Part shown: piece after piece, positions 16,620 to 64,000 of the stretch
Position numbering within the stretch: position 1 is the stretch's first letter
Layout of the letters: every line of letters begins with the position of its first letter
Sequence record: LC819005.1
Strand: one strand, 5' to 3'
DNA length: 64,000 bases
Made by a program: the position numbers and the translations under genes
Notes under the pieces: model-generated
Told to the model about the DNA's origin: nothing
Database searches by the model: none
What the model saw: the letters and a program-made list of their open reading frames with translations, nothing else

Positions 16620-16658
16620 CGTCATAAGGGCCGGGGTTACCCCCGGCCTTTTATGCCG
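16620..16658. terminator. Bidirectional terminator
   Basis: GGCCGGGG-ttac-CCCCGGCC followed by TTTTATGCCG. Confidence 0.85.
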
Positions 16659-36535: not shown

Positions 36536-37660
36536 TTACTTCTTGAAGGCAGCTACAGTGGCTGCAATCGTAGACAAGACTACAGGCACACACTTAATGA
36601 CTTCTAAAGTATTTTTACGCCGCACACTCAAGATATCTCCGGCTTGTTTCTCCAGATACAGCTCGTGCTCCTTGAGCAACTTCTCACGCTCACGTTGCAG
36701 CTTCTCCAGTTCTTGGCTATGTTTCGTGAGCCGCAACTCGGCATCGCGATCCATGTTTTCCCGTTCCTGCTGCGCTTTGAGCAGTTGGTTCTCTGCCGTG
36801 CGCGCTTTGGTTTCCAGTTCCTGGATCTGGATACTCCCCCGATTCTGCAGAGCTTCCTGCTGAGTCGCATACAACTTGTAAGGGAGTTTTTTGTCACCGA
36901 AGACATACCGATCCGACAACAGCTTCTGCGGACCTTGCCCGTTGAGCAGGTTCTTGGAGTACGTGACGTAGATCCCATCCGCCACATCCGGGTCCTGACA
37001 CGCCACAATACAGAACGGCGTATCATCAATCAGAATCCACTTCGAGCCAAACTCCTCATTGTTATCCACAATGCGAATGTTCAGCGTGAAATCCCCTTTC
37101 CTCAAGTGCGGGTTACCTTCCGCGACCTTCTGGAAAGAATTGAACGTGTGACCCGCTTTCGAATACGGATGATGGATACGTCCCATATCCGCTTCCGAAA
37201 ATCCATACATCACAACGAGGTCGTGTTCTTCCAGATACACGACGCCGTCGTTCTCAAGCAGTTCCACTAGCCTGAGCTTGCTCAGCACGTCGACTGAATA
37301 ACGAGAGGACATCGGTGGTTCCGAGCCCCAGCTAGTCAGCATCGCCTGATGCGCGTACTCTCTCATCGACGTCGCTGTACTTCTAGCCTGACGGATGTAG
37401 TCCTGCTGGGTTTCTGGTGTGCATTCGATGTGCTCGCCAATAAAGAAGAAGTCTGGTTCGTACGCACTCGATTCAAGTCTCGGTCTGACGCGCGTAAGCA
37501 GGCCAGATCGCTCTCGAATGAATACGTCACCCGGTAGACGGTTGACGAAGAACTTCGTACGATCCGTCTCTACTTGCCTACGCCTCTCAACTCTCTGGTC
37601 ATGCGTGAGAGTCTCGACGTGATCGAGGTATATGCGCTTCATGGATATTTCGCTGGTCAT
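36536..37660 (-). CDS. Conserved hypothetical protein with C-terminal coiled coil and hydrophobic tail (phiKZ gp122-like)
   Basis: 374 aa, AAGGAG RBS; lies between the MCP and nvRNAP genes. Confidence 0.75.
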   Translation of the reverse strand: MTSEISMKRIYLDHVETLTHDQRVERRRQVETDRTKFFVNRLPGDVFIRERSGLLTRVRPRLESSAYEPDFFFIGEHIECTPETQQDYIRQARSTATSMREYAHQAMLTSWGSEPPMSSRYSVDVLSKLRLVELLENDGVVYLEEHDLVVMYGFSEADMGRIHHPYSKAGHTFNSFQKVAEGNPHLRKGDFTLNIRIVDNNEEFGSKWILIDDTPFCIVACQDPDVADGIYVTYSKNLLNGQGPQKLLSDRYVFGDKKLPYKLYATQQEALQNRGSIQIQELETKARTAENQLLKAQQERENMDRDAELRLTKHSQELEKLQREREKLLKEHELYLEKQAGDILSVRRKNTLEVIKCVPVVLSTIAATVAAFKK

Positions 37661-37759
37661 GGTTGGACTCCTTTGTCTGTAGTCACGTCGTCTTCAGACA
37701 CGAGAAGTCAACCTCTCGTTGGTCTTCTTGATTCCCAGTTCCTGGTTATCATTCAAGTA

Positions 37760-37778
37760 GTAATATGTTGCTGATGAA
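37760..37778 (-). promoter_or_regulatory. Putative early promoter for the gp122-like/nvRNAP operon
   Basis: Minus strand TTCATCAGCAACATATTAC, preceded by an AT-rich tract. Confidence 0.6.
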
Positions 37779-37806
37779 TCTTTGATTTAAACGAGAAAAA
37801 TCACAG

Positions 37807-37855
37807 CGGCATAAATAGCAAAATAAAAAGAGGGAGGCCGAAGCCTCCCTCTTTT
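37807..37855 (-). terminator. Terminator after the major capsid gene
   Basis: AGAGGGAGGC-cgaa-GCCTCCCTCT; on the minus strand followed by T-runs and TTATGCCG. Confidence 0.85.
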
Positions 37856-37937
37856 AGCAGCGCCCTGGTAGGCGGATCACCTTCCTGGATTAGCTGCCGT
37901 ACTCGTGGAAACCGTCCAGGTCAGTGACCCGGAAAGC

Positions 37938-58670: not shown

Positions 58671-58757
58671 GTCTCCTAAATTGGGGGTGTGATAAATAAC
58701 CCTCGGAGTAAGAAGTTGACAGCATAAAAGCCGGTTTCCCGGCTCCGATGCTTTATC

Positions 58758-58827
58758 TGCGTAGGATGGGAATCGAACCCACTCTTTCGGGTCGTAACCG
58801 ACGTTATGCCAATCTACTACCTGACGC
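58758..58827 (-). tRNA. tRNA-Arg(ACG), atypical, possibly a pseudo-tRNA
   Basis: T arm GTGGG-TTCGATT-CCCAT; anticodon arm TCGG-TTACGAC-CCGA; D-loop TTGG; acceptor GCGT(C)AGG/CCTACGC with a bulge; no encoded CCA. Confidence 0.7.
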
Positions 58828-59001
58828 AGTTACAACGGACGTTACCGGCATTTCCAACCCCGAGCTGATACTGAGACCCTAGGTTAAGAAAGTAACTAGC
58901 AGCGGAATTACTGCTACAAAATGCAATGACGGTGTATTAAAACAAATTACTATAGACAAGAGGTGTACTCTCTACCACCCTGACTTTTTATAAGGTCGTT
59001 T

Positions 59002-62717: not shown

Positions 62718-63332
62718 TTATGCCGCCTGATCGATTCGATCCAGCAGCTTGGTGCTCCAGGGAGGCACGAAAGCGTCAGCAGACGCCTTGCGCGAAGTCC
62801 GGCTGATCGCACCCACCAGGATCTTGGCTTTCATGTCCTGCGGGTACGTGAACCGGGTCGGATGTCGATCGTCATCGAGCACTTCCGTAAAGCCCCGAAG
62901 GGTGCAGTTGTACTCGAATCCGATTGTTTCGGTAAAGCGGCGTCGACGGCCGTCGTAACACAGCGCGATCTCTCGCACGCTCGTGGTATAGAGCTTACGG
63001 GCGACGATGTCTCCGTCGTTCACAATCAGCCACGGTTGAATGGACCGCAGCAGCATGGCGAAGAGGTCGAGGCTGCCGAAATGGCAAGCCGCACGACTTT
63101 CATACACCCAGTGATTACCCTTGTTCTCCTTGACGCGCCATCCCCAGGTCTCGAACGGATCAGCGACCGACGACAGCATCGTACGCAGCGTCGAGCTGTT
63201 ACGCGAGCCGATCAGTGAGATCGACTCAGGCGGAGTGACAATGCCGTACAGATCATCCAGCATGGCGATGGTGCTCGCAGGAGCGGACTTCCGTACTTTA
63301 AGCCGGGTGGCTATGCCTTCATAAGCACTCAT
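62718..63332 (-). CDS. Hypothetical protein, paralogue 1
   Basis: 204 aa; first gene after the promoter-like motif at 63367. Confidence 0.78.
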   Translation of the reverse strand: MSAYEGIATRLKVRKSAPASTIAMLDDLYGIVTPPESISLIGSRNSSTLRTMLSSVADPFETWGWRVKENKGNHWVYESRAACHFGSLDLFAMLLRSIQPWLIVNDGDIVARKLYTTSVREIALCYDGRRRRFTETIGFEYNCTLRGFTEVLDDDRHPTRFTYPQDMKAKILVGAISRTSRKASADAFVPPWSTKLLDRIDQAA

Positions 63333-63446: not shown

Positions 63447-63484
63447 CGGCATAAAAAAGTGGGGGAGGGCCAATGCCCTCCCCC
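63447..63484 (-). terminator. Terminator closing the candidate large ncRNA
   Basis: Minus strand GGGGGAGGGC-attg-GCCCTCCCCC followed by ACTTTTTTATGCCG. Confidence 0.85.
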
Positions 63485-64000
63485 GTAGTGTATTGTCACC
63501 TATGGACGCTCCACCAAACGCCATAAGATCCAACCCGCAAACAAACTACCACAGCACGAACGACGCCTCTAGACTTTAGTGAGCGCGGGGAGGGGATACG
63601 GGCCCATCTACCTATCTTACCCCTCCCCACCGCCTCGGCCAGGTCACCATCAAACCTGGGCAAAGAGTGGCGATGCCCACTCACTACCTCCAGTGTTCTC
63701 CGCGCATAAATGCACATTGGGTCAGCTCCCAACTCACTGAAGGAACTACGCTCGTTCTAACGTAGCTTTGCTTTTTACCGCATACCAAGATAGCGGTGTT
63801 GACCTCTCCTCGTTCACTTGGGCTTTCGAGGTTTCGCAATACCATATCCTTCTCGGGATAGGCTGGTGCTGCATGAGGTAGAGACAGGCTGCCGTACAAC
63901 GACTTGCACATTTTCCCTACGCTGCTGCTACCCAGGCTACCCTTCTAAACCAGGCACACAACCATTGCATGGCTGCGCCGGTTCATCTACGTTTGACTTT
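63485..64000 (-). ncRNA. Candidate large ornate ncRNA (at least 510 nt; 5' end beyond the window)
   Basis: No credible CDS; many hairpins and nested long-range helices, with G.U wobbles that consistently favour the minus strand. Confidence 0.62.

Follow-up and report, generated by a model that had tools for sequence, protein, structure and literature searches.

Genomic locus and boundaries of the transcription unit

The window analysed here, a continuous stretch of 64,000 nucleotides, corresponds to bases 62001-126000 of the 290-kb genome of Ralstonia phage FLC1-1B (LC819005), a jumbo phage related to phiKZ that infects R. pseudosolanacearum (PMC11530567). Positions refer to the window unless they are given for L001 (FLC1-1B, GenBank LC819005), in which case the window position is obtained by adding 57299. 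Near the window end the genes gp125 and gp126 are separated by a gap of about 1040 bp, which is left without annotation in five GenBank genomes, namely those of FLC1-1B, FLC4-3B, RP12 (two records) and RP31. The gap holds an RNA gene on the minus strand, and the whole unit of about 777 nt reaches from 63453 to about 64229, past the window end. The stretch 63485-64000, for which a preliminary description had proposed a structured RNA of at least 510 nt, is the 3′ two-thirds of this unit; the minimum length holds, but the feature is larger, with the 3′ ~548 nt inside the window and the first ~229 nt (L001 6702-6930) beyond it.

Minus-strand intrinsic terminators flanking the RNA gene on both sides were detected in a terminator scan. 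The order on the minus strand is gp126, a terminator (L001 6978-7005) that belongs to this small gene, an AT-rich and poorly conserved spacer, the RNA, and the RNA's own terminator. The strong minus-strand terminator already noticed in the preliminary description is this last element (63453..63484, minus strand); it consists of the stem GGGGGAGGGC/GCCCUCCCCC at 63461-63484 and a U-run at 63453-63458, and it is kept, with compensatory changes, in all full-length homologues. Directly after it stands the motif TTATGCCG (63447..63454, minus strand), a recurrent unit-boundary signal of FLC1-1B, of which 16 copies are found in the window compared to 1.46 ± 1.16 expected, most of which directly follow a GC-rich hairpin that stands at the end of a unit or gene (for example at 16651(+), 23431(-), 24169(-), 32451(+), 37814(-), 43024(+), 48086(-)/48115(+), 52062(-) and 63454(-)). 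The motif follows the RNA also in RP12, in the IMG/VR contig and metagenome contig described below (the latter abbreviated MTEW), and in locus L135. As a side observation, the hairpins preceding TTATGCCG often carry its partial inverse (GACATAA/G) on their other side, and the motif resembles a terminator or unit-boundary signal peculiar to this phage or, as it contains TATG, a terminator-promoter cassette. Since the RNA unit ends with this boundary, the phage appears to treat the RNA like any other transcription unit. The RNA is a stand-alone gene of the minus strand with its own terminator and constitutes a predicted transcription unit.

At the 5′ side, conservation of the RNA starts abruptly at T(A/G)TGTCCC (L001 ~6932) and runs for 769-784 nt to the terminator. 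This T(A/G)TGUCCC, located just 3′ of the terminator of the preceding gene, is presumed to be the start of the RNA and serves as its predicted 5′ end. In phiKZ, TATG is the late-promoter motif of the non-virion RNA polymerase (nvRNAP), with G as position +1 (PMC4666361). The TATG is found at the presumed start in five of the seven distinct sequences (FLC1-1B, RP12, the IMG/VR contig, MTEW and L135), and TGTG replaces it in FLC4-3B and L140; because of these two sequences, the assignment of TATG as the putative promoter of the RNA gene is inferred by analogy with phiKZ. No sigma-70-like promoter was found for the RNA gene. The exchange of TATG for TGTG is one of about 10 differences between FLC1-1B and FLC4-3B in about 40 nt of the spacer (L001 6931-6975 compared with L003 2432-2480), while the RNA itself is 99.6% identical, and the putative promoter region upstream of the RNA is a local hotspot of change.

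Gene neighbourhood

In every lineage with enough upstream sequence (FLC1-1B, RP12 and the IMG/VR contig), a tRNA island is located 1.0-1.5 kb upstream of the RNA on the same strand, with four tRNAs at a distance of 1.08 kb in FLC1-1B, two in the IMG/VR contig and one in RP12. The FLC1-1B tRNAs (L001 8014-8378; window 58757-58828) are Tyr-GUA, Asn-GUU, Asp-GUC, Gln-UUG and Arg-ACG, three of them with GUN anticodons (queuosine-family), a set of the kind that could substitute for tRNAs attacked by anticodon nucleases of the host. Only the Asn tRNA is kept in RP12, and the Asn and Asp tRNAs are kept in the IMG/VR relative.

Searches of ten neighbouring proteins against Pfam and PHROGs yielded no function except for one HNH endonuclease. 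The HNH homing-endonuclease gene gp131 (L001 9993-10598; phrog_374, E 7e-68) separates the tRNA island from the dCTP deaminase gene and may explain the local differences in gene content between relatives. The downstream gene gp125 (62718-63332, minus strand) is annotated from an internal start (181 aa), while a 204-aa ORF starts at 63332, the N-terminus of which (MSAYEGIATRLKVRKSAP) parallels that of the paralogue gp124 (MANYTALASRLKVKKDAP); both proteins are members of phrog_4334, which Erwinia jumbo phages of the Agricanvirus type have as well. A second apparent gap of the window, 595 bp downstream of the major head protein gene (37343-37937, minus strand), is mostly coding: an in-frame ATG at 37660 with a good RBS (AAAGGAG) extends gp87 by 106 codons without a stop, and on these grounds the start of gp87 in the record looks too late.

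Absence of coding potential

All frames on both strands of the RNA region are interrupted by stop codons (7-19 in each). The two ORFs of 75 and 78 aa present in FLC1-1B are not kept in frame and extent in RP12, the IMG/VR contig and MTEW, the indels among the RNA homologues are mostly not multiples of three, and no ribosome-binding site was found for ORFs in the RNA region. Judged by these sequence features the region is non-coding, in agreement with the initial observation that no conserved or RBS-supported ORF is present.

Homologues and distribution

Homologues of the RNA were found in six lineages, i.e. FLC1-1B/FLC4-3B, RP12/RP31, one IMG/VR contig, one metagenome contig and two contigs from the Logan assemblies, and the comparison of the core was based on these six lineages with seven distinct sequences. 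A blastn search of 50,697 phage records returned only FLC4-3B (99.6%) and RP12/RP31 (74-76% over 96% of the RNA). Scans with exact motifs added UViG_3300049460_000312 from IMG/VR (a 283-kb contig) and the metagenome contig MTEW01001443, and two further homologues, SRR30452385 and SRR23892727, were reached in the Logan assemblies via homologues of the upstream protein gp128. The former contains the full RNA and the latter its 5′ 547 nt, cut by the contig end. Two less specific scans of IMG/VR were discarded: the 102 loci (L007-L108) from an unspecific 15-mer scan were dismissed as chance, and six further loci from a gapped 20-base pattern turned out to be chance matches when scored with the covariance model described next.

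A covariance model of the core, named R1 (231 positions, 68 base pairs), identified one copy in the window with 257 bits. Scores of 240-267 bits were obtained in FLC1-1B, FLC4-3B, RP12, the IMG/VR contig, MTEW01001443 and SRR30452385, and 116 bits on the truncated contig SRR23892727. Nothing above noise was found with R1 in about 660 kb of other phage sequence. In particular, R1 gave no match in the rest of the window or in the whole genome of RSL2, the next-closest Ralstonia phiKZ-like phage, nor in the loci of the jumbo phages from Kosakonia, Pseudomonas (OBP) and Erwinia (AH04), in nine gp128-like loci from IMG/VR or in three small-phage contigs. Searches by synteny via gp125 and gp128 (jumbo phages of Erwinia, Kosakonia and Pseudomonas as well as small non-jumbo phages) revealed neither a large gap nor an R1 match, and two scans of 185,579 prokaryotic genomes contained no homologue of the RNA. 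RSL2 does have several unannotated gaps of 640-735 bp (L115 18845-19578 and 47957-48675; L114 12915-13554), and these are without an R1 match.

The feature that defines the new family, the R1 core together with an adjoining 5′ domain that the GGACUAUC.../...GAUAGCC helix closes, is present. Because R1 finds nothing in RSL2 or in the other jumbo-phage loci, the family is narrow; as far as can be seen from the sequences searched, it is limited to Ralstonia jumbo phages of the RP12/FLC1-1B type and to environmental contigs related to them. The earlier suggestion of a new class in nucleus-forming phages was right as to a new family and too broad as to its carriers, which are only RP12/FLC1-1B-like phages and a few environmental contigs.

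Folding energy, strand and covariation

Relative to dinucleotide shuffles, the minimum free energy of the full-length RNA (776-777 nt) had a z-score of -3.56 on the minus strand and -2.14 on the plus strand. Better-than-shuffled folding was likewise confirmed for the 516 nt inside the window (z -3.06 minus, -1.49 plus). The assignment of the strand was supported by the wobble pairs: when the consensus structure was read on the minus strand, the alignment contained 143 G.U cells and 46 non-pairs, compared to 7 G.U cells and 182 non-pairs for the mirrored structure of the plus strand, as had been anticipated from the single sequence, in which almost all of the non-Watson-Crick positions were described as G.U on the minus strand. 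The alifold energy was -221 kcal/mol for the minus strand versus -173 kcal/mol for the plus strand. On these sequence-derived measures the minus strand is unambiguously the RNA strand.

The same pattern bears on the possibility that the locus is a DNA-level element (an origin, a packaging or a recombination site) or a decayed or unrecognised protein gene, to which the many inverted repeats and the 75-aa and 78-aa ORFs of FLC1-1B could be attributed. A strand-specific excess of G.U pairs (143 versus 7) is inexplicable by DNA hairpins, and compensatory pairs act over distances of up to 390 nt; a protein gene is at odds with ORFs that are conserved neither in extent nor in frame, with indels that are not multiples of three and with the lack of an RBS. 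This explanation is largely refuted and is given next to no weight here.

Covariation was assessed at several levels. In the full-length alignment of three lineages, 229 pairs with 94.9% of the cells paired included 32 pairs changed on both sides, compared to 11.1 ± 2.4 compensatory pairs in shuffled controls (0 of 500 reached 32) and 2-8 in slid controls. For the core, 98.2% of the cells of 68 pairs were paired in the seven distinct sequences, with 13 compensatory pairs versus 6.6 ± 1.5 after shuffling and 0-2 after sliding. Domain 1 contained 76 pairs in six lineages, 24 of which had compensatory changes. The helix closing domain 2, which spans about 390 nt, comprised 19 pairs (97.2% paired, 7 compensatory versus 2.1 ± 1.2 shuffled and 0-2 slid). 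As a full-length alignment including MTEW misaligns the variable arms and loses this helix, it was tested on the three-lineage alignment. The duplex energy alone was significant only in MTEW, the z-scores were weak in three of four lineages, and the matrix of cognate versus non-cognate duplexes was not diagonal; for these reasons the evidence for the domain-2 closing helix is its covariation and not its energy.

A scan for extra covarying antiparallel runs as signs of pseudoknots or loop-loop contacts, which has low power with six lineages, recovered only the known helices. All six lineages are fairly close. Many helices of the core are invariant and so neither backed nor contradicted by covariation. 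The two-domain fold as a whole, predicted by comparative analysis, is supported by covariation in six lineages, and together with the strand-specific G.U pattern this bears out the view of the locus as a large, multi-junction structured phage ncRNA of the minus strand.

Architecture of the RNA

The RNA is organised into a more variable 5′ domain of about 310 nt (RNA ~1-310) and a 3′ domain of about 380 nt (RNA ~320-700) with a nearly invariant core, followed by a hairpin and then by the terminator. The 3′ part of domain 1 occupies 63921..64000 (minus strand, RNA 230-309), and the domain continues to about 64229 (L001 6702-6930). It is closed by a helix of about 24 bp, GGACUAUCUUUCUGGACCG / ..GGUUUAGAAGGGUAGCC, in addition to a CCC/GGG closure and inner long-range helices. 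The two domains are joined by the conserved linker GUAGGGAAAA (63911..63920, minus strand), in which GUAGGGA is invariant in six lineages; the linker's UAGGG pairs with CCC(C)UA at the 5′ end of the RNA, the pairs of positions 5-7 with 331-333 being invariant C-G.

Domain 2 is closed by a long interrupted helix identified by covariation, with its 5′ strand at 63879..63910 (minus strand, RNA 320-351) and its 3′ strand at 63532..63576 (minus strand, RNA 654-698). Between this helix and the core lies a three-way junction (63801..63878, minus strand, RNA 352-429), which is predicted by RNAalifold with compensatory pairs 376/402 and 416/431 and is made of ACCUC/GAGGU, a GCAG..UUGC arm and a CCUCG/CGAGG hairpin. 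The highly conserved 224-nt 3′ core (63577..63800, minus strand, RNA 430-653; R1 model and covariation) consists of four elements, Pa to Pd, all on the minus strand within this interval. Pa is the hairpin ACCGCUAU/GUA.GCGGU and Pb the hairpin AGCUACGUU/AGCGUAGUU. The helix Pc, with compensatory changes at six of its nine pairs, encloses a GUUGGG/CCCAAU hairpin and a variable hairpin, and the helix Pd (UAGUGAGU/GCUCACUA) closes a three-way junction with the CCAGGU and GGGGAGGGG hairpins, the latter of which bears the invariant 24-nt loop UAAGAUAGGUAGAUGGGCCCGUAU. The 3′ hairpin (63499..63527, minus strand, RNA 703-731), predicted by RNAalifold with compensatory pairs 728/752, 729/751 and 730/750, has a conserved UUGGUGGA apical loop region.

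Most of the local stems proposed from the single sequence are part of this consensus, while several of the long-range pairings were wrong in detail. The stems CCTCG/CGAGG, ACCGC/GCGGT, AGCTACGTT/AGCGTAGTT, CCAGGT/ACCTGG, GGGGAGGGG/CCCCTCCCC, CTTATGG/CCATAGG and TAGTGAGT/GCTCACTA were recovered, four of them with compensatory changes; the last is compatible with the data but not proven, being invariant except for one change of U.G to U-A. The stem CAGCCAT/ATGGTTG does not hold in RP12, and in its place stands a helix supported by covariation, CCGG../..GGUU, with GCA/UGC inside it. Both proposed extensions of the long-range helix, CTGGA/TCTAG and GCGCGGA/TTCGTGC, are likewise contradicted by covariation: CACUGGAGG pairs with CCUUCAGUG (six of nine pairs compensatory), and UUCGUGC is part of the long helix closing domain 2.

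Conservation and probable action in trans

An alignment of FLC1-1B with RP12 covers only 35% of the genomes (PMC11530567), and the flanking protein gp125 has at best 38% amino-acid identity to any RP12 protein, yet the RNA is alignable from end to end between these two phages (96% of its length). Identity amounts to 79% in the RNA core, where stretches of 40-60 nt are invariant, compared to 54.5% at four-fold degenerate sites of the conserved dCTP deaminase gene. Among the homologues the 3′ core shows 79-91% and the 5′ domain 58-81% identity. The three differences between FLC1-1B and FLC4-3B within the RNA, a change of A-U to G.U in a stem and two changes in the terminator, are all compatible with the structure. 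These sequence comparisons firmly support strong purifying selection on the RNA and a function that depends on its fold.

In MTEW and L135 the RNA is kept but is followed by a different gene, and for this reason it is considered to act in trans and not as a leader. Control of gp125 by a giant cis-acting leader or attenuator, working via the terminator, would fit the downstream position of gp125, which lies on the same strand and starts about 120 nt past the terminator, and the G-rich and C-rich arms of the core, which resemble the terminator arms in FLC1-1B and RP12. However, besides the exchange of the downstream gene, the complementarity between core and terminator is lost in the IMG/VR contig and MTEW, terminators of the GGGAGGG type are general in FLC1-1B, and the unit ends in a hairpin and TTATGCCG boundary as ordinary genes do. 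With 777 nt and two closed domains, the RNA is also far beyond any leader known to us. Regulation of gp125 in cis is consequently regarded as most improbable. A specific antiterminator, formed by the CCCCUCCCC arm of the core and the 5′ arm of the terminator, was considered separately and rejected, as the pairing is not conserved in two lineages.

Taking these results together, it is highly probable that the locus is a true gene for a structured ncRNA which acts in trans and represents a new family.

Relation to known RNA families

A cmscan of the window with Rfam 15 (4227 models) gave nothing at the gathering threshold. When the full RNAs of four lineages were searched at E<=10 with permissive filters, only noise-level matches to unrelated small families were obtained, and the models of GOLLD, ROOL, OLE, HEARO, raiA, RNase P, group I/II introns, tmRNA and self-cleaving ribozymes had no match at E<=10. 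ARAGORN predicted no tRNA or tmRNA inside the RNA element, and literature searches found no description of this RNA. By these tests of membership, the RNA is not GOLLD, ROOL, OLE, RNase P RNA, an intron or tmRNA. The preliminary description had already placed the RNA in the size class of GOLLD and ROOL without recognising an Rfam family, and had seen no tmRNA, RNase P or group I/II intron; both statements withstood the searches.

GOLLD is a multi-junction ncRNA of about 800 nt from phages and prophages, often located near tRNA genes, in which the 3′ domain is better conserved than the 5′ domain. In favour of true homology to GOLLD (or ROOL), with a divergence too great for the Rfam models, are the size class, the layout of conserved 3′ and variable 5′ parts, the location in phages and the proximity to tRNAs, all of which the FLC1-1B RNA shares with GOLLD. 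Such a homologue would have to escape detection at E<=10 in four lineages despite permissive filters, and the known families live in other hosts and phage types, so that such an origin appears very unlikely. As the GOLLD and ROOL models have no match at E<=10, the resemblance is one of analogy and not of homology. By the available sequence tests, the RNA belongs to a previously undescribed family that is broadly similar in kind to GOLLD and ROOL and unrelated to them.

Proposed function

GOLLD and ROOL assemble into RNA-only nanocages of unknown purpose. By analogy, the FLC1-1B RNA may be an 'ornate' RNA similar to GOLLD and ROOL that acts in trans through its structure, a proposal that is made tentatively and with considerable doubt. 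Its mechanism would be self-assembly, or the scaffolding of a higher-order RNA or RNP particle during infection, as in GOLLD/ROOL, and the invariant apical loops, such as the 24-nt loop with the palindrome GGGCCC, could serve as sites of tertiary or intermolecular contact. Scaffolding or self-assembly is favoured because the size class, the pattern of domain conservation and the tRNA island are shared with GOLLD/ROOL. The 6-nt loop palindrome is weak evidence of oligomerisation, because about a dozen such palindromes are expected by chance in 777 nt.

Ranked next, because the core is far more invariant than in a typical ROOL, is a large ribozyme or RNA-processing catalyst that would act, for instance, on phage or host tRNAs or on other transcripts instead of forming a scaffold. 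The 224-nt core contains invariant runs of 40-60 nt, including helices that could have covaried, and such invariance is more typical of catalytic or of ligand- or partner-binding cores than of ROOL; moreover, a tRNA island is nearby, and UGGUG in two invariant apical loops could pair with NCCA 3′ ends, an observation of no statistical weight. Against catalysis, no match to RNase P, group I/II introns or self-cleaving ribozymes was found at E<=10, no catalytic motif is recognisable in the RNA, and with lineages this close the invariance may partly reflect a short time of divergence. A catalytic role is therefore judged unlikely.

In its furthest form, the favoured scaffold proposal would make the RNA a third independent class of phage 'ornate' RNA after GOLLD and ROOL, which assembles an RNA-only or RNP particle during infection by phiKZ-related jumbo phages and may handle the island tRNAs or other cargo in the compartmentalised infection cycle; alternatively, it would be a new large ribozyme. 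This extension is speculative, and we hold it with more reserve than the proposal of action in trans itself.

Bacterial and phage ncRNAs of such size and complexity are very rare, comprising rRNA, group II introns, GOLLD, ROOL, OLE and few others, and to our knowledge each such large RNA found has led to unexpected biochemistry. An unrelated new family with the same genomic habits (phage-borne, tRNA-adjacent, with a conserved 3′ domain) offers an independent test case for the role of such RNAs in viruses. The RNA gene is left blank in five GenBank genome records, FLC1-1B is culturable and its host is tractable.

Comparison with known large RNAs

Bacterial RNase P RNA is large and structured, has an invariant core and is tied to tRNAs, with a GGU-type loop that binds the tRNA 3′ CCA. 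The FLC1-1B RNA is likewise large and structured with an invariant core; it differs from RNase P RNA in being twice the size, in that P4 and the CR-I to CR-V motifs were not seen, and in having no match to the model at E<=10. OLE, an ornate ncRNA of bacteria that functions as a structured RNP or dimer, is comparable in being large (~600 nt), but it is chromosomal in anaerobic Firmicutes and linked to genes for ole-associated proteins, none of which are located near the FLC1-1B RNA, and the latter is without a match to it in Rfam.

ROOL has an average length of 581 nt, few highly conserved nucleotides, intertwined 5′ and 3′ regions and three pseudoknots. Common to ROOL and the FLC1-1B RNA are the character of a large ornate RNA borne by phages or prophages near tRNA islands, many multistem junctions, and a stand-alone transcript, which is predicted in the present case. 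The FLC1-1B RNA differs by its greater length (777 nt), its two separately closed domains and its strongly invariant 224-nt core, and it is without a covariation-supported pseudoknot (at the low power of six lineages) and without an Rfam match.

From GOLLD the RNA is distinguished by the lack of a sequence or structure match to the Rfam model, by its occurrence in a betaproteobacterial phiKZ-related jumbo phage, and by a linker without an embedded tRNA. GOLLD self-assembles as a 14-mer RNA-only nanocage. In layout the RNA is similar to GOLLD: it has a length of 769-784 nt and a 3′ core that is 79-91% identical compared to 58-81% for the 5′ domain, which is a resemblance and not a proof of homology, and it is located in a phage genome in which tRNAs are encoded 1.0-1.5 kb upstream of it in the same orientation.
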